Source of the DNA: Geosiphon pyriformis uo1 | Taxonomy: Eukaryota; Fungi; Glomeromycota | Length of the DNA: 8,653 nt | Direction: 5' to 3' | NCBI GenBank assembly: GCA_016748015.1 | Contig: JAAOMT010000462.1 | Coordinates: 1-8,653 of the forward strand | Part shown: positions 1 through 8,653 of the stretch, in pieces | How positions within the stretch are numbered: the first letter of the stretch is position 1 | How the letters are laid out: each line of letters begins with the position of its first letter | Notes under the pieces: generated by a model | Database searches by the model: none | What the model saw: the letters and a program-made list of their open reading frames with translations, nothing else | Told to the model about the DNA's origin: nothing | Program-made: the position numbers and the translations under genes

Positions 1-509
1 CTCCTGGGGGACTACTGGTGGATGAAGTGGAATGGGCATGGGTCCTCATGGTGGATATTGGGGAATCTGGGTTGTTACCTAGTGTACTCATGGGGGTCAT
101 GTGGGTATTAGTGAATATAGGGGATATGGGGTATAGAGACATAGGGTCTGGGTAGTACCTATGGTCACTAGTTGTGGTACTGGGTACTAGTGGTTGTGGG
201 TATTAATGGATCTAGTATAGTCAGATAGGGAATAGGATATGGTAGGATGGGATAGGGGATAGTGTATAGTAGTACCTTTTGTACTATATCTGGGTAGAGT
301 AGTACCTGTTGTACTCATGGTTGTGGTAGGTGTGATAGAGTACCTCTTGGTCCTTATGGAGTATAGGTAGAGGGGATAGAGGATATGGGGCATAGGGTTA
401 TGGGTAGATGGTGGAGTACAAAGGGTACTAGAGTAGTGGTCTAGGTAGTCCCAGGTACTAGAGTATTTGGATCTAGGGTTTGGGTATTGGTACTATTACT
501 AATGCCATA

Positions 510-1425
510 ACACCCGGGCGGCAGTTTGTTGGGATGTCTATCAGATCGTGGTGGTGTTGGGGAGGAGGGATAGGTGCTCTACCCATTTACTTGTAGAGTA
601 GATGTTTTAGTAGGCACCACCATATATGGAATAATAATTGGGAGGATGTGCGAAGATCGTTATAGTATATTGTTGGCGTTGGACTGGTATTGGTATAGGT
701 TTCTAATTGGGACAGGTTTATGTGATTGGTTAGGCAGTATTTTGTAGAGCGAGTATTGGTCCAATAGTATCGCCACACCTTTGGGACCATTAGGATATTA
801 TTTCTAGTATATTGGAGTTTTTACCCTTTGTCTTGAAAGCCCCCTTGGTCCCATTGCTTTCTTGAATTACCCTTTGTAGTCTTGATCCCTGTTTGGAATG
901 CATACGACAGTCTTGGGGGATAGAGAGTAGACCTTTTTGTGGGTTTGGGGATAGGCCATAGGGTAGTAATTGATTGTAGGATTGTTTGGTACCCCTACTA
1001 GTTGGGGGGGGGATGCCCTTATTACCCTTTGGGTGCCCCAAATTAGACCTGACTATGGAGGTTTTAACTAGAGGATAGACCCTCATGGGTATATGGTAGT
1101 GGGTATCCATACGGGGTATTGGTTGGGATAGTCTTGATGGGTATCTTTGGTACTACTTTACCCTTTTGTAACCCTATGGGACTACCATTAACTTTGGGGA
1201 CGTCTGGAATTGGACAAAGACAGGGCAAGTGATATCAAGGCCAGTCTTTAGCCCTTGTTTGGTACCCTAGTTGGTTAGTACGCCATGGATGCATTGGATC
1301 TCGTTGGGTAGGGTACGGGGACAGATTACTACTGGGGCCTTCTTACTCTATAGTTCTCTATTGGGTAATCAGTCTACAAGGGCTTTTGATGCCTTTGTAA
1401 GGGATCGGTACTGGAGAGGGTATGG
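510..1425 (+). pseudogene. Possible highly degenerate plastid/cyanobacterial-type SSU (16S) rRNA relic
   Basis: Short matches in the correct order to 16S motifs recalled from memory (see findings). The universal 530-loop and helix-44 motifs are absent, so the matches may be chance. Confidence 0.17.
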
Positions 1426-1597
1426 ATATACCCATACTACTAGGGATAGGATCCCACATTTCTACCACTATTACCAATGGATGGCTTTGTACATACTTGT
1501 AGTGGGAAACCTATCATAAAGCCTGTTGTAACTACCTAATTGGGTAATGTAGTAGTAACAGTAGCTTCTCCAGTTGCATTGGGTACTAGATATATGA
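1013..1597 (+). CDS. Hypothetical 194-aa ORF, open only if TAA/TAG are read as sense (e.g. Gln, translation table 6)
   Basis: ATG directly follows the G9 tract (1004-1012) and the first in-frame TGA is at 1595-1597. Contains an in-frame TAG TAG TAA CAG TAG run (1550-1564). No recognisable homology, and the length is attainable by chance with a single stop codon. Confidence 0.15.
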
Positions 1598-1690
1598 GGT
1601 ATTTGATTTGCTTGTAGATTTTGGCGTATAGAGCCTGATTGGTGATTGGTTGGAGTTATACCTGTTTTGTAGGGAGCTATTGGATGGGTA

Positions 1691-1767
1691 GCCCCCCCCC
1701 CGAATTTCAACGCACACCCTCTACTGACTCGCCCCCCCCCGAACCCCGGGTCGTATAGGTGGGGGGC
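1691..1767. promoter_or_regulatory. GC-rich direct repeat plus stem-loop; candidate replication origin or conserved core
   Basis: G-C10-GAA (1691-1704) and G-C9-GAA (1731-1743) start 40 nt apart. GCCCCCC (1731-1737) can pair with GGGGGGC (1761-1767). Locally CpG-rich in a CpG-poor molecule. The function is inferred. Confidence 0.4.
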
Positions 1768-3173
1768 CCTATTGGGTAATGAGTACAAATAGGTAGTAGA
1801 ATATGGATGTCAAGCATATGGCCCCTTATCCCCTCCTGTTTGACGACTCCCCATGCATACCAATCTATTGCGCCCCCCCCCTTGTAAGACAACAGTCCCC
1901 AATACCCCCCTATTAGGCTTAGCCCTAAGATGTTTGGTCTATGCCCTCCTCGGCTACCACGAGACTACGATGGGCCCCCCTAGATCCAGTACTACATTGC
2001 TTTAGCCACTGCACCTTTGAACGATATGAGGGCTATACCCATGATAGGGTTGGGCTTGGATTGACTACCTCTTTGGCTACTAGCCGATCAAACCCACTCT
2101 ACGCTCTTTAACCTTATTCCTATGGCCCCAGTTTGATCCCTTTATTTGTTGAGATCCCCCCTTTATCGAGCCTATTACTTTTGGATCAATGGATACACGA
2201 CTCGTCTAATGGTATTGGGATACCAAGAAGTGATGACCAAGGTTTGGGCATGTAAGATTTGGTAGTGGGGGTCCCCTTACATCTACATAGATGCCATTCG
2301 TGGTAAATGAGTATCAAAGATCATGGAATCCGTAGGGAGCGCGGTATAAGAGGTATCCTGGTCAAGTCTTTATGCCCTGATATGACCTGTTTTGGGACTA
2401 CTAACTGATGAGTAGGCTTGATTTGATTTGTGGCTTTTGTTTATGTAATTGGTGAGTAAATACTTTGCGGGTATACGGTATGGGTTGTAAAGGTGGTTGG
2501 ATTGGTGGGATGGATCTTCCTGATTATTGTGGATCTCTATTTAGTCAGTTTGTGGTCTACCTATAGCCATATCCCCCTCATTGACTATTACTGACGACTT
2601 GTTCTACAGGATCCGAGTTTGGGCTTTGGTACTTGGTCTAGCCCTCATCATGGGTTAATGATTGCGCTACCATACTCTCTATGATTAAATTGGGGATCTT
2701 GTAGACTTTTTGAGTACTTGGTTTGGTAGCCTATTGGGACTTAGTTGTCCCCTCATGATTTTTAGCCTATGATGGTTTACAATGTAAAGCTTTGTTGATG
2801 ATTGTTAAAGGGTATTTGGTTGGGTTTTGGGTACTTATAAGCATGTTATCCTTGATGGGTACTGTCACCAGAATGCAGTCTAAACCCACACTATCCAACT
2901 CTAAACGAGTATCCATATATCCCTGCTGAGGATTTTTGGTCAGATTTGGAGCTGGAGGTATTTGGTAGCAAAGTAAAGTATAGGGTATGGTAAAGAACCC
3001 TTTATCCACAGGACTTGCTTACACCTTAATTGGTTTGGGATTTGGAACTGGGATTATGGATTTATTGCTACATCGATAGCTTTCAATAGAGTAGCGATAG
3101 GTATGTGACTTGACTTGGATAGATTGGGAATTAATTAGGGACGAATCTTGGCACTGAGTTTGATCCCCTCATA

Positions 3174-4910
3174 CCCCCCCCCCTTACCTTATTCTCCAAA
3201 GCTCCAGCTCTCTGCTTTAAACATACGGCGGCCTTGTTTATACTATCCTAGAGAGATATTTGCTTTATTGGCTCCATTACTTTACACAGGAGGTCGCGGG
3301 GACTTGGTCCTATTTTGCTTGCTTGGTAAGTCCTCCCCCACCTATCCACCAATTCTGACCCTTAGAGAGTTGGTTTTATACTGTTTTATTGGTTGGGTAG
3401 GTAGTATGGGTAAGCCTCATTGATTGTTGTGAGTAGAGGGAGATGAGTACACAACTGCTATATAGGGATAGTTGGTGTGGCTATGATGGTCTACTGTATA
3501 GGCCCCCCCCCCACCCCCCCAGTAACTGGATGTCTATTCTACTTAGAGGATGGGCCTGTACATAGTAGTCCCTTGATGATTGGTATAGGAATAGGGCTTG
3601 AGTATTAAGGTCTTTTATTGGGTAGCACAACACCTTTATTTGGTTTGGGACACGGGTGGAGCGCTGACCTTTTAACTACTTAGACTACCTGCAGACCCTT
3701 TGTACCCTTCTAAAACTACTGGGTTGAGGATGCTAGACAAGTTGTTCATAAGCGCTTACCATTTTAGGGATTCACTCTATGGTACTCCTGTATTAGGGTC
3801 TGGTTAGATTTTTGTTGTTATTAGTGGTGATAGTACTCTATCAGGTTTGATTGATAGGTTATCTTTGTGGTTATTTGGAGTCGCTTATTCCCACTACTCC
3901 CTATTTCACCCCCCCCCACCCCCCAACCACCAACAACCCCCCCCCCTCGGCTTCCTTTAAGAAATGGTATGGGAGTGGGTATTAGCTATATGGTTGTTTT
4001 AGTCGCATATTGCGCACGAGTTGCGTAGCTGTGGAGGTAGATACTGAGGATCCCAGATTGGTTGGATATGGGGGAGTTGGGGAGGATGAGGGGACTATAT
4101 GGTAGACCCGGTCCAATAACTTACCCACCCATTTTGTGGGGTTTGTACTAGAACTGTCCTGGTGGGGAGGACCGTAGCCCATGATTTCAACCTTGCTGGG
4201 GTTGGTAGTACTTGAGTTAGAGTACTAGTTAACTTGTGCCATACCTATTGGTCCCCATGGACTCCTTTACGCGTATCCTTGTTGGTAGTCTTTTGGATCT
4301 ACTACCCATAACTGATGGAGAGTCTGGATAGCGGTAGATTTGATTAGGCAGGGTCTGCTTGACCTTTATGAGTTGCTCAACATGGTGGGTATTTGGGATC
4401 CCCCCCTATACAACCTTGACTGACTAGACCTAGTACTCTTTCGGGACTTGGTGCATGTTAAATAGGGGGAGTCTATTAGGTAGTATTCCAGTGATCCTTT
4501 TACAGGCCAGGGGCCATATACCAGTGCCCATGATACCCCCCCCCCGCCCTTGATTGGTATGGTTTGCTATCCTTACTTGTGGTGACTCATGATTGACTTT
4601 GTTTGTTATCTAATTGGCCCCTAAATTGACTTGGTGTATATTATATGGTAAGTACTCTAGTATGATGGATATTCAGTACACCTACCAGGTATAGGGACGG
4701 CCTGGCATTAATCATAAAGGGGAGTAGCCTAAGAGTTAGTCCTGTTGGAGACTCTCCGGGTATAGTGGTTAAAAGCCCTCCAAACGATACCAAAGTAGTT
4801 TGTGGAGTTGGTTGTGGTAAGGCTGGTTGTAATTGGCATTCTCCTACTCCTATAAAATAGTCACCATATGTTACCATACAACCAATACTACCCCTACCCA
4901 CCCCCCCCCC
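3174..4910 (-). repeat. Series of C9-C10 tracts (G-tracts on the minus strand)
   Basis: C10 at 3174-3183; C10-A-C7 at 3503-3520; C9-A-C6...C10 at 3909-3946; C10 at 4536-4545; C10 at 4901-4910. Further tracts outside this span at 1692-1701, 1732-1740 and 1873-1881. Confidence 0.92.
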
Positions 4911-5065
4911 ATTAAGTACCTATTGGATCCATCCAATTACCCCTTTTGTATATATGGATCCATACCTTACTACATTTTGTAGCCGACAAAGAGTTTGCTG
5001 CAACAACCATACTTGTATGAGTCTATTGCGACTCCTTGTACTACTGGCCTTTTAGTACTGGTCCA

Positions 5066-5878
5066 TCATTTGATTCTTTGTTTAGCCATTTGGTAGCCTT
5101 GATATCTTACCCCCCTTTTTATACCTTATTGACAATACCTGGGACCCCTATAACCTACTTGGTTGGTTTGGGACGGGATCCATATTACCTGGTTTTGACT
5201 GTCAGCAGGGCTCATAAAAGGCTAGATACTGTAACTGTTTACTATTTTATGCCCAGGCTACATGATAGTGATTTTTGTATTGGGACTATTGGTTACCTTA
5301 GGGTAAGATTTTTGCTTTGGTAGCCATACAAGTTTAGTTTGGTCCCTCAGTTGTTGGGGCCTGCTCAAAGTTTAGAGTTTACCGATTGTTTGGTGTGTGG
5401 GCACTAATGGGAGATATGGTAGGAGTATCCCCTATGTGGTTTGAGCAAGTACTTTTAGTCTGCTTTGGGTATGGGGACCTTATTGAGAGGCTTCGAGATA
5501 TTGGTGTCTCTAGAGTTTACAAGCTAACTCATGTGTGGGTATTTGGGATACCTATAAAACAAGGCTTCCCGTAAGCGACCTCCCTTTTATTGATCCCCTC
5601 ACATTGAGGATTGGATGTTACTATAGGGAGTACTTTGTTGGATAGGGCTACCCTTTTTTTTTCTTTACGGGAGGTTGAGTTACCTGTCTACTTTATTAAT
5701 GATATCTGTAGCCTCCTTTGTGGGATTGGGTATTGGGGACATATGGGTATTATGGGGGATAGGGGACCTATTGTAGTGGGTAATAGGGGATATGGGTGAG
5801 AGGGGTAGATTTAGTACTAGGGTATTGAGGGTAGGATTTAGTACCTGTGGTACTAATGGGTATTGGTGGTCTGTACAT
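5066..5878 (-). CDS. Hypothetical 270-aa Q/P/K-rich ORF, open only under TAA/TAG reassignment
   Basis: Runs from ATG at 5878 to TGA at 5068-5066 with no other in-frame TGA. Includes a PPVKKKKG basic patch. TGA is rare on this strand, so significance is weak. Confidence 0.12.
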
Positions 5879-7450
5879 AGGGTACTCATTGTGTGATAGG
5901 GTTGGGGGGATATTGGGGGATTGGGTATGGGATATGGTTGGGTATCTGGGAGGACCTGGGGTCCTAGTGGTGGGTCATGGAGATGGTGGAATATGGGGAT
6001 CTGGTGGAGTGCCTATTGCACTGGGGGTATAGAGGGTAGAATGGGTCAGATTGAGTAGTACCTGGGTACTAGGGGATGGTGGGTAGTATAGAGTACCTCG
6101 GTCCTATTTGTGGGATCTGGTAGACTGGGTCAGATATGATATAGGGTAGTACATATGGTAGAGTGGATCTAATAGAGTACACCTATTGGACTCATGGTAC
6201 TCATGGTGGTATGGTATAATTGGTCATAGGTATCTAAGGGACATATTGGATAGGGTAGGTAGAATAGGGGACTCATGGGTAATAGGGGATATGGGTATAT
6301 AGGGTCTGGTGTAGTAGGTATTTAGGTTATGGGTATGGGTAATAGGGAATATGGTAGTACCTATTGTACAATGGATCCTATGGTAGAGTACCTCTAGTAT
6401 TAGGGTAATAGGGGATAATGGGGTATGATCTGACCTTTGGTACTAGTAGAGGCATTGGTCATAGGGGATATGGGTATGATTGGGATAGGGGATGGAGTAC
6501 CAGGGTCCTATTTGGGGACATCTGGGATGGATAGTAATAGGGTACCTATTGTACTAGGGGGGATATTGGTAGTACCTATTGTACTAATAGGGTATTGGGC
6601 ATATGGGATCTGGTATGGGTATGGGGTAGTATGGGTAATAGGTCTGATGGGTAGTATATGCCAAGGGCCCTATGGGCATAGGGTAGAATAGGGCATAGGG
6701 GGCATATGGGTATCATGGGTAATAGGGGATTGGTGGAGTACCTATTGTAAGATGGGCAGGGGGATCTGGTGGGTAAGAGGTTGTAGTGTAAGATGGGTAA
6801 TGGGGATATTGGATAGGATAGAGGACCTACGGTCATAGGGGGGGATAATTGGTATTAGGTACTCATGGTGTGATAGGTATGGGTATGATGGAGTGCCTAT
6901 TGCACTATAGGGATATGGAATCTAGTGTATGGGGAATCTGGGTATTAGGGGGACTCCTGGGGGACTACTGGTGGATGAAGTGGAATGGGCATGGGTCCTC
7001 ATGGTGGATATTGGGGAATCTGGGTTGTTACCTAGTGTACTCATGGGGGTCATGTGGGTATTAGTGAATATAGGGGATATGGGGTATAGAGACATAGGGT
7101 CTGGGTAGTACCTATGGTCACTAGTTGTGGTACTGGGTACTAGTGGTTGTGGGTATTAATGGATCTAGTATAGTCAGATAGGGAATAGGATATGGTAGGA
7201 TGGGATAGGGGATAGTGTATAGTAGTACCTTTTGTACTATATCTGGGTAGAGTAGTACCTGTTGTACTCATGGTTGTGGTAGGTGTGATAGAGTACCTCT
7301 TGGTCCTTATGGAGTATAGGTAGAGGGGATAGAGGATATGGGGCATAGGGTTATGGGTAGATGGTGGAGTACAAAGGGTACTAGAGTAGTGGTCTAGGTA
7401 GTCCCAGGTACTAGAGTATTTGGATCTAGGGTTTGGGTATTGGTACTATT
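5720..7450 (+). repeat. ~1.7-kb G-rich low-complexity domain of shuffled short motifs (continues as 1-~495); candidate control or constant region
   Basis: Built from GGGTAT, GGGGATA, GTACC and GATCT words, with almost no CpG. Exact internal repeats: TGGGTAATAGGGGATATGGGT at 5777-5797 and 6276-6296; TCATGGGTAATAGGGGAT at 6273-6290 and 6713-6730; TGGAGTGCCTATTGCACT at 6005-6022 and 6889-6906. Boundaries are approximate. Confidence 0.85.
5838..7268. repeat. Dispersed dyad/mini-hairpin family AGTRC-N(4-5)-GYACT
   Basis: Copies at 5838-5856 (TTAGTACC-TGT-GGTACTAA), 6008-6022, 6056-6071, 6356-6370, 6541-6555, 6570-6586, 6892-6906, 270-286 (=7223-7239) and 301-315 (=7254-7268), plus an imperfect one at 153-170. 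Confidence 0.8.
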
Positions 7451-8653
7451 ACTAATGCCATAACACCCGGGCGGCAGTTTGTTGGGATGTCTATCAGATC
7501 GTGGTGGTGTTGGGGAGGAGGGATAGGTGCTCTACCCATTTACTTGTAGAGTAGATGTTTTAGTAGGCACCACCATATATGGAATAATAATTGGGAGGAT
7601 GTGCGAAGATCGTTATAGTATATTGTTGGCGTTGGACTGGTATTGGTATAGGTTTCTAATTGGGACAGGTTTATGTGATTGGTTAGGCAGTATTTTGTAG
7701 AGCGAGTATTGGTCCAATAGTATCGCCACACCTTTGGGACCATTAGGATATTATTTCTAGTATATTGGAGTTTTTACCCTTTGTCTTGAAAGCCCCCTTG
7801 GTCCCATTGCTTTCTTGAATTACCCTTTGTAGTCTTGATCCCTGTTTGGAATGCATACGACAGTCTTGGGGGATAGAGAGTAGACCTTTTTGTGGGTTTG
7901 GGGATAGGCCATAGGGTAGTAATTGATTGTAGGATTGTTTGGTACCCCTACTAGTTGGGGGGGGGATGCCCTTATTACCCTTTGGGTGCCCCAAATTAGA
8001 CCTGACTATGGAGGTTTTAACTAGAGGATAGACCCTCATGGGTATATGGTAGTGGGTATCCATACGGGGTATTGGTTGGGATAGTCTTGATGGGTATCTT
8101 TGGTACTACTTTACCCTTTTGTAACCCTATGGGACTACCATTAACTTTGGGGACGTCTGGAATTGGACAAAGACAGGGCAAGTGATATCAAGGCCAGTCT
8201 TTAGCCCTTGTTTGGTACCCTAGTTGGTTAGTACGCCATGGATGCATTGGATCTCGTTGGGTAGGGTACGGGGACAGATTACTACTGGGGCCTTCTTACT
8301 CTATAGTTCTCTATTGGGTAATCAGTCTACAAGGGCTTTTGATGCCTTTGTAAGGGATCGGTACTGGAGAGGGTATGGATATACCCATACTACTAGGGAT
8401 AGGATCCCACATTTCTACCACTATTACCAATGGATGGCTTTGTACATACTTGTAGTGGGAAACCTATCATAAAGCCTGTTGTAACTACCTAATTGGGTAA
8501 TGTAGTAGTAACAGTAGCTTCTCCAGTTGCATTGGGTACTAGATATATGAGGTATTTGATTTGCTTGTAGATTTTGGCGTATAGAGCCTGATTGGTGATT
8601 GGTTGGAGTTATACCTGTTTTGTAGGGAGCTATTGGATGGGTAGCCCCCCCCC
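6954..8653. repeat. Terminal direct repeat, copy 2 (redundant with 1-1700)
   Basis: Constant 6953-nt offset. The window ends inside the poly-C tract equivalent to 1692-1701. Confidence 0.97.

Follow-up and report, generated by a model that had tools for sequence, protein, structure and literature searches.

Layout of the unit

The stretch of DNA that was analysed (8,653 bp, here called the window) holds no recognisable gene and is made up of one complete unit and part of a second. Bases 1-1700 are repeated at 6954-8653 with 0 mismatches in 1,700, which gives a unit of 6,953 bp; the window spans just 1.24 units. The G+C content of the unit is 44.8%, with plus-strand counts of 2239 T, 1914 G, 1600 A and 1200 C. 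The features are:

1-6953, no strand assigned: full unit of circular-mapping (or tandem) DNA
6954-8653, no strand assigned: second, identical copy of bases 1-1700, reaching the window end
5700-7443 (unit 5700-6953 plus 1-490), plus strand: repeat zone of ~1.75 kb, from self-BLAST and autocorrelation
5813-6906, plus strand: 13 of 17 mini-hairpins
271-429 (= 7224-7382): the other 4 of the 17 mini-hairpins
491-5699, plus strand: unique part without internal repeat, from self-BLAST and word counts
1004-1012, plus strand: G9, the sole long run of opposite sense
1692-1881, plus strand: C-run cluster 1, with C10 (1692-1701), C9 (1732-1740) and C9 (1873-1881)
3174-3946, plus strand: C-run cluster 2, with C10 (3174-3183), C10-A-C7 (3503-3520), C9-A-C6 (3909-3924) and C10 (3937-3946)
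4536-4910, plus strand: C-run cluster 3, with C10 (4536-4545) and C10 (4901-4910)

The 1,700-bp repeat extends to the final base of the window, where it breaks off within a C10 run. What sets its length is thus the window end and not a biological boundary, and the round figure suggests that the sequence was wrapped around or cut before analysis. The exact overlap means that the DNA is circular-mapping or tandem and nothing beyond that; a tandem array would give an identical picture. An LTR retrotransposon was also considered and rejected, since the repeat reaches the window end inside a C run and no remnant of a reverse transcriptase, integrase or RNase H is present.

The unit consists of a repeat block and a unique part. 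This division (~1.7 kb repetitive, ~5.2 kb unique) and the unit length of 6,953 bp had both been proposed in a preliminary description of the sequence; the identical overlap of 1-1700 and 6954-8653 bears out the latter, and self-BLAST, in which similarity is confined to 5700-6953 plus 1-490, bears out the former. All internal matches in the block are direct and degenerate, with ~60-65% identity. Its composition is lopsided (G 37%, C 9%; 46% G+C), GGG recurs about every 9 nt, as seen from an autocorrelation peak at lag 9, and all eight canonical G-quadruplex motifs on the plus strand lie inside it. No inverted repeats of at least 20 nt were found in the window, and those below 20 nt are just short and imperfect.

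The repeat zone also contains 17 mini-hairpins with the pattern AG(T/G)(A/G)C, a 4-7-nt loop and G(T/C)(A/C)CT. Perfect matches to the 5-bp stem occur 29 times in the zone, compared with 4.5 +/- 2.3 in shuffled sequences, a roughly 6-fold enrichment. The variants AGTGC/GCACT (6008, 6892) and AGGAC/GTCCT (5951) preserve pairing. Double-sided changes that keep the stem paired were counted in three cells, which was equalled in 4 of 500 shuffles; the copies had been chosen at no more than one mismatch, so that the percentage of paired stems is biased.

Strand bias, C runs and dinucleotide composition

The unique part takes up ~5.2 kb, or ~75% of the unit, and self-BLAST of 500-5700 gave no internal matches. 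The two strands of the unit differ strongly in composition. AT skew is negative in 33 of 33 windows, with more T than A in all windows of 500 bp, and GC skew lies at 0.46-0.63 across the repeat zone; the strong strand skew reported in the preliminary description is therefore confirmed. Negative GC skew is restricted to windows at about 1500-2250, 3500-4000 and 4500-5250. Strand-biased words occur throughout the unique part, for example TTGG with 110 copies against 17 of CCAA, and TTGGGA with 15 against 0.

Nine C9-C10 runs occur, where 0.005 would be expected, and all are on one strand, which otherwise has little C; their lengths may be under-called. Cluster 1 lies within the first island of negative GC skew (about 1500-2250) and cluster 3 within the island at about 4500-5250. 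Within cluster 3 a weak, imperfect hairpin was noticed at 4804-4904, which Rfam compares to mir-9186 with an E-value of 0.53, far below the gathering score.

CpG is strongly depleted, with an observed/expected ratio of 0.03 in the repeat zone and 0.30 in the unique part. CC/GG is raised, CC reaching 1.95 in the unique part. TpG and CpA are not in excess (TG 0.87-1.05, CA 0.84-1.06), and TpA is not depleted. Judged by Karlin-type dinucleotide surveys, this pattern agrees better with mitochondrial DNA than with nuclear DNA that is methylated. The RIP indices TpA/ApT and (CpA+TpG)/(ApC+GpT) fit RIP-type decay. As the main explanation RIP was rejected, with a G+C content of 45%, a bias that is one-stranded and no transposon remnant.

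Absence of genes

Whichever simple genetic code is applied, the unit contains no protein gene, and it has no known RNA gene either. The longest start-to-stop ORF has 106 aa (790-1110, minus strand). The longest stop-free run has 120 codons, fewer than shuffling in 250-bp blocks gives on average (144 +/- 30). With seven stop-codon schemes the open frames showed no excess length over block shuffles, and in a codon-periodicity scan no window rose above the shuffled scans. The preliminary description had seen no ORF above 106 aa and no Rep, capsid or polymerase motif. Both statements hold, and searches in Pfam, PHROGs, NCBIfam and the PDB came back blank. In Pfam, 237 stop-free pieces of at least 20 aa (150 of at least 30 aa and 87 of 20-29 aa) had no significant match; PHROGs and NCBIfam, searched with the 150 pieces of at least 30 aa, gave none either. 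Each piece was searched on its own, with no pieces joined, and the best E-values of the family scans (0.005-0.01) are at chance level for this many queries. Ten long stop-free pieces compared with the PDB gave nothing below E 0.5. A Rep-encoding plasmid, an ssDNA virus and a phage were accordingly rejected as identities, as no replication, capsid or polymerase gene was found in these searches and no DNA match among the plasmids and phages compared.

RNA genes were sought with Rfam at E<=1, which gave three chance-level matches only and no rRNA, and with ARAGORN, which gave no tRNA in standard mode; its permissive organellar modes made a few low-quality calls that we judged to be false positives. 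Bacterial promoter- and terminator-like sites were at or below chance.

The interpretation in the preliminary description predicts recognisable fragments of organellar genes. This prediction found no support: in Pfam at E<=0.5-1, none of the 237 pieces matched a family of COX1, cytochrome b, NADH-dehydrogenase, ATP-synthase or photosystem proteins. The search is insensitive and would miss modules that are shorter than 20 aa, interrupted by TGA, divergent or edited, as well as unassigned (y) genes.

Searches for relatives

BLASTN against 72,556 plasmids and 50,697 phages gave no match. In IMG/VR, five exact patterns and two degenerate patterns had no match; two scans of GTDB genomes gave none and then 9 single chance matches; three word searches of a protein word index revealed no kin; and none of 20 ATG-started ORFs was present in a collection of 15 billion proteins. 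Sibling circles with a common block, which the interpretation in the preliminary description also predicts, found no support either: neither IMG/VR nor the GTDB genomes nor the index of protein words contained a partner sharing the repeat block, the test being an insensitive one. A metagenome scan with two copies of the gapped pattern GTACCTNTTGTAC, which is unspecific, matched at least 120 unrelated contigs. In several of them the copies are spaced in multiples of 3 nt and are probably coding repeats, and BLAST of the window against the 120 contigs listed gave nothing. A literature search for the motifs of the window as strings yielded nothing relevant.

Comparison with known circular DNAs

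The mitochondrial circles of diplonemids measure 2-12 kb and are almost wholly non-coding; in Diplonema papillatum they form classes A and B of 6 and 7 kb (PMC3035467, PMC7049700, PMC5658414). Within one organism, diplonemid chromosomes have a constant region in common (over 90% identity across more than 100 bp), and their cassettes carry modules of mitochondrial genes that are transcribed separately, end-trimmed and trans-spliced. The window resembles them in the size of its unit, in being non-coding, in having repeats of one orientation that are confined to one block, and in its pronounced GC skew. It differs in that it has no recognisable gene module among the 237 pieces and no detected sibling sharing the block. 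In D. papillatum, moreover, the constant region makes up 95% of the circle, so that the proportion is reversed with respect to the window. The nearest layout is that of class D of Sulcionema specki, in which the common block is small and the cassette takes up 83-90% of the circle (PMC7049700); the 75% of the unique part here comes close to this. In Namystynia, homo-oligomer motifs flank the modules (PMC7049700). Diplonemid constant regions have no sequence in common between species; thus similarity cannot decide membership.

The plastid minicircles of peridinin dinoflagellates combine a conserved non-coding core with a variable part and include gene-less versions; the core of Heterocapsa contains 9G-9A-9G (PMC2665238). 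They are non-autonomous with a core-plus-variable design, as is proposed for the unit, and the 9G-9A-9G motif recalls the C10-A-C7 and C9-A-C6 runs of the window. However, they are ~2-3 kb in size and usually carry one plastid gene, compared with a unit of 6,953 bp here, and their cores are 250-500 bp long, AT-rich and built of inverted and direct repeats, in contrast to a G-rich block of 1.75 kb. A dinoflagellate plastid minicircle was rejected on account of the size, the block, the lack of an inverted repeat of at least 20 nt and the lack of any plastid gene family.

Kinetoplastid guide-RNA minicircles are similar in having no protein genes; they are replicated in trans, as the unit may be, and encode small RNAs only. 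They are typically ~1 kb long, and certain bodonids have larger circles. The universal 12-mer of kinetoplastids, conserved sequence block 3 (GGGGTTGGTGTA), has no match with 0-1 mismatch in the window, and the five matches with 2 mismatches are at chance level (3.5 expected). On the strength of this result a kinetoplastid minicircle was rejected. In the Stylonematophyceae, which are red algae, mitochondrial minicircles consist of a cassette and a constant region that is specific to the species and has tandem repeats (PMC10250338). Unlike the window, each of these carries one or two complete genes, and gene-less circles were sought there and none found.

Nuclear macrosatellites are arranged head-to-tail in units of several kb, are non-coding and fast-evolving, and are often strand-asymmetric; assemblers circularise such arrays. 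In all this the window may be like them. It is unlike them in that its dinucleotide pattern does not resemble methylation decay, and a uniform strand bias together with C runs of conserved length over 5.2 kb of unique sequence is unusual.

Discussion

A possible interpretation, which we favour tentatively, is that the unit is a non-autonomous circle replicated in trans, built of a constant block and a unique part as in multipartite organelle genomes. This reading draws on the exact overlap, the absence of genes and RNAs, the one-sided composition and the strand-specific words, on the enrichment of hairpins, the nine C9-C10 runs and the loss of CpG without an excess of TpG/CpA, and on the precedents given by the class D layout of Sulcionema and the homo-oligomer motifs of Namystynia. 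Several observations count against it: no mitochondrial or plastid gene fragment appeared in the 237 pieces even at lenient thresholds; plasmids, phages, IMG/VR, GTDB and the protein word index contained no sibling or relative; circularity is deduced from the overlap, which may be a wrap-around given its round length; and the repeat block is degenerate (~60% identity) where clean long repeats might have been looked for. Satellite DNAs, too, may be strand-asymmetric.

A nuclear tandem repeat ranks second and is nearly as likely, the architecture fitting both readings about equally. The DNA would then be the unit of a macrosatellite or complex satellite whose array was circularised by the assembler or was cut off after 1.24 units. 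In that case the G-rich block would be a degenerate minisatellite within the unit, and any function would be limited to chromatin. An overlap cannot separate a tandem array from a circle, no gene or RNA of any sort is present, CpG is strongly depleted, the repeats are G-rich, degenerate and of short period, and an absence of relatives is what fast-evolving satellites would give. Against this origin, the loss of CpG comes without the TpG/CpA excess of methylation decay, and TpA, far from being depleted, is over-represented. Furthermore, the two 1,700-bp copies are identical, whereas adjacent satellite units usually differ, an argument that is void if the overlap is a wrap-around. Finally, a one-sided, unrepeated part of 5.2 kb with C9-C10 runs on the C-poor strand suggests a strand-specific process. 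The high degree of organisation of the sequence makes it unlikely that the unit is a gene-less by-product with no role, be it eccDNA, an amplified non-coding piece of organellar or nuclear DNA (petite-like or senDNA-like) or an artefact of assembly or consensus building. The lack of coding or RNA signal, the lack of a match in any collection searched and the round 1,700-bp overlap would all agree with such an origin. Yet 6-fold hairpin enrichment, a 9-nt periodicity, nine C runs matched in length and a uniform strand bias are unlike a randomly excised fragment or a chimera; an amplified region of a larger organelle genome is still compatible with them. By far the least probable is a prokaryotic or viral mobile element (a plasmid, a satellite or a recoded phage) whose genes an unusual code or extreme divergence would mask. 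The size of the circular-mapping contig, which is plasmid-like, would suit it. However, the longest frame stays within the range of shuffles when TGA, TAG, TAA or TAA plus TAG are read as sense. The stop-free pieces would be sub-pieces of any recoded ORF, yet Pfam, PHROGs and NCBIfam were blank, BLASTN found nothing in the 72,556 plasmids and 50,697 phages, and promoter- and terminator-like sites do not exceed chance. To our knowledge, 7 kb without a gene is unheard of among plasmids and viral elements, and we consider this reading close to refuted.

If the unit is indeed an organellar circle, it could be pictured as a small DNA of high copy number that has no replication or packaging genes of its own and would be copied and maintained by factors supplied in trans. 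Its location would most plausibly be a eukaryotic organelle, in which it could be one chromosome of a multipartite genome or a selfish passenger of it. The 1.75-kb G-rich block would be the cis-acting part, with the role of an origin, a promoter and/or a partition site; it would also be the portion that sibling circles have in common. The excess of G+T on one strand could stem from one-way transcription of the whole circle or from asymmetric replication by a strand-displacement or rolling-circle mechanism. The C9-C10 runs may punctuate the long unique part, for instance by marking sites of pausing or processing, and whatever information this part holds, if any, would be short RNAs or pieces of genes invisible to homology. 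A more specific version, which we think rather improbable, is that the circle, as a chromosome of a multipartite organelle or a selfish element, comes from an unsampled lineage and has no gene piece that homology can recognise, with the G-quadruplex-prone hairpin block as its maintenance region and the C9-C10 runs as punctuation of transcripts.

Should the DNA prove to be a satellite, it would be an ordinary one. The practical lesson is that read-level evidence is needed before gene-less circular contigs are named replicons. An organellar circle, on the other hand, would add to the few lineages known to have an organelle genome broken up into gene-poor circles. It would provide a compact example of full sequence with a candidate cis-element, namely the hairpins within a 9-nt lattice rich in G, and with the C9-C10 runs as candidate punctuation, where signals for replication and RNA processing are obscure even in Diplonema. 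If it came from an unsampled lineage, this would mean that extreme fragmentation of an organelle genome arose independently once more, or else that the circle is a gene-less parasitic replicon that is purely cis-acting.

Unit, overlap and two-part layout

Positions 1-1700 and 6954-8653 are identical, with 0 mismatches; the window thus spans 1.24 units of 6,953 bp each, the unit size given in the preliminary description. Measuring exactly 1,700 bp, the overlap runs up to the window's final base and ends within a C10 run. Therefore its length is set by the window and not by biology, and it shows that the unit is a circle or a tandem, nothing further. The round figure suggests upstream wrap-around or trimming rather than a natural assembler overlap.

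In self-BLAST of the window, internal similarity was confined to 5700-6953 and 1-490 (together the repeat zone, 5700-7443), with all matches direct and at about 60-65% identity. No internal repeat was found in the remaining 5.2 kb. This bears out the proposed division into a repetitive part of about 1.7 kb and a unique part.

Coding potential and RNA genes

The ORF list contained nothing above 106 aa from a start codon, the same limit that had been read from the sequence beforehand. The longest stop-free run under the standard code was 120 codons, below the shuffle mean of 144, and the longest open frame never exceeded those of 250-bp-block shuffles, be it with the standard code or with TGA, TAG, TAA or TAA+TAG read as sense. 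TAG triplets are very frequent, and a code with TAG as the only stop gave shorter frames than in shuffles. In windows of 180-450 nt, three-base periodicity did not rise over that of shuffled scans; the strongest window of the unique part, 4591-5040, reached p ~1.6e-3 before correction for 232 windows.

All stop-free pieces of 20 aa upwards (150 of at least 30 aa and 87 of 20-29 aa) were queried one by one, none of them joined. Pfam gave no significant match among them. The organellar gene fragments that had been predicted found no support, as no mitochondrial or plastid family appeared among the 237 pieces with E allowed up to 0.5-1. The pieces of at least 30 aa drew a blank in PHROGs and NCBIfam, and for ten long pieces no PDB sequence matched at E below 0.5. 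Any recoded ORF would contain such stop-free pieces, so the family scans extend, with less power, to alternative codes. As far as the search tools used can see, the unit is gene-less.

ARAGORN detected no tRNA, and Rfam at E<=1 returned three chance-level matches and no rRNA. One of these, a miRNA match (E 0.53), is underlain by an imperfect 28-nt inverted repeat at 4804-4904 (71% complementary, 45-nt spacer), which lies within 4591-5040, the region of highest but non-significant three-base periodicity. Bacterial promoter- and terminator-like sites were at or under chance level. Directly upstream of the repeat zone, at 5561-5680, both strands fold better than mononucleotide shuffles in a sliding scan (z ~-5 and -4.6); with dinucleotide-preserving shuffles z was only -1.7 (5545-5700), and the signal is probably not meaningful.

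Repeat zone

G makes up 37% and C 9% of the repeat zone, and GGG is spaced by about 9 nt, with autocorrelation peaking at lag 9. The plus strand has eight canonical G-quadruplex motifs, every one of them in this zone. The zone also carries a family of small hairpins:

271-429 and 5813-6906: mini-hairpins, 17 copies, AG(T/G)(A/G)C, loop of 4-7 nt, G(T/C)(A/C)CT

Perfect hairpins with a 5-bp stem numbered 29 in the zone versus 4.5 +/- 2.3 in shuffles, a 6-fold enrichment. Compared with the form AGTAC/GTACT, double changes that preserve pairing at two stem positions occurred in AGTGC/GCACT (twice) and AGGAC/GTCCT (once); as many were reached in 4 of 500 shuffles, and three copies have a half-changed, mismatched stem. 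This covariation is suggestive of a selected hairpin, and the evidence is only modest because the copies were picked by pairing, with at most one mismatch.

Strand asymmetry and C runs

The strong strand skew noted previously was confirmed: T exceeded A in all 33 sliding windows, and GC skew, at 0.46-0.63 throughout the repeat zone, fell below zero only in windows over about 1500-2250, 3500-4000 and 4500-5250. Strand-specific words pervade the unique part (TTGG 110 versus CCAA 17), and therefore one strand-specific process shaped the whole unit. The repeat zone had a CpG observed/expected of 0.03, the unique part one of 0.30; GpC was also low, TpG and CpA were not raised, CC and GG were high and TpA was over-represented. 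Methylation decay leaves a different signature. In published surveys mitochondrial DNA lies nearer to such a pattern, which is a lead and not a test.

Between 1692 and 4910 the plus strand carries nine runs of C9-C10, where 0.005 runs of at least eight C are expected:

1692-1701, 1732-1740, 1873-1881, 3174-3183, 3503-3520, plus strand: C runs
3909-3946, 4536-4545, 4901-4910, plus strand: C runs, continued
1004-1012: G9, opposite sense

The C runs sit on an otherwise C-poor strand, share no common flanks and keep tightly to lengths of 9-10, which may reflect a function as punctuation or under-calling of homopolymers by the sequencing platform. On the minus strand there are four G-quadruplex motifs, all falling at C-run clusters of the unique part.

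Search for relatives

The sibling circles predicted for this DNA likewise remained without support. BLASTN found no match in 72,556 plasmids or 50,697 phages, and IMG/VR had none to five exact patterns or two degenerate protein patterns. Three long pieces used in word searches brought up no relatives. A first scan of GTDB genomes gave nothing, a later one nine single chance matches. Twenty ATG-started ORFs were absent from a collection of 15 billion proteins. In a metagenome collection a gapped hairpin pattern, which fits repeats of other origin too, matched at least 120 contigs unrelated to the window. The motif GTACCTNTTGTAC, repeated within 10-40 nt, occurred many times in unrelated metagenome contigs (including loci L011, L070, L076 and L080), which have no similarity to the window beyond it; in several its copies lie at multiples of 3 nt and were taken for putative tandem coding repeats.

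Comparison with known circles

Diplonemid mitochondrial chromosomes are circles of 2-12 kb with hardly any coding sequence, a pronounced GC skew and repeats that point the same way (PMC3035467). The unique part accounts for 83-90% of the circle in Sulcionema class D, similar to 75% here, and Namystynia has homo-oligomer motifs around its modules (PMC7049700). Constant regions share no sequence between species (PMC5658414), and therefore the missing similarity says little. Unlike a diplonemid chromosome, the unit has no recognisable module within the sensitivity of the family scans. The universal 12-mer of kinetoplastid minicircles is absent. The unit differs from dinoflagellate minicircles in size and core composition and lacks their long inverted repeats and plastid gene; the features of a Rep-encoding replicon or an LTR element were not found either. 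We file the present DNA in no family.

What the DNA may be

The unit combines a block of same-sense repeats, which has a possible structured cis-element, with a long unique remainder and a uniformly G+T-rich strand, and it has no gene that would serve its maintenance. Non-autonomous circles maintained in trans are laid out in this way, and those best documented belong to multipartite organelle genomes. By this analogy our leading explanation is the one first proposed, a non-autonomous organellar circle kept in trans, which we hold only tentatively and at less than even confidence, neither of the predictions open to testing, that of gene fragments and that of siblings, having found support. The unit may work like an organellar circle of constant block plus cassette, of which it is a candidate member. 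That it comes from an unsampled lineage with a multipartite organelle genome, as one of the chromosomes or as a parasitic circle without genes, seems distinctly improbable.

A nuclear tandem repeat, which we consider only slightly less likely, would explain the circular mapping, the missing genes and the missing relatives equally well; the only points against it are the dinucleotide pattern, the bias along the whole strand and the C runs. Less likely than either the organellar or the tandem reading are a by-product circle or artefact, which we consider improbable, and a hidden plasmid or virus, to which we give very little credence.

If the unit were a nuclear tandem repeat, it would be ordinary. 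As an organellar circle it would join the known gene-poor mini-chromosomes, adding a candidate cis-element and an unusual punctuation by C runs; as an organellar chromosome or parasitic circle of an unsampled lineage it would be highly interesting.
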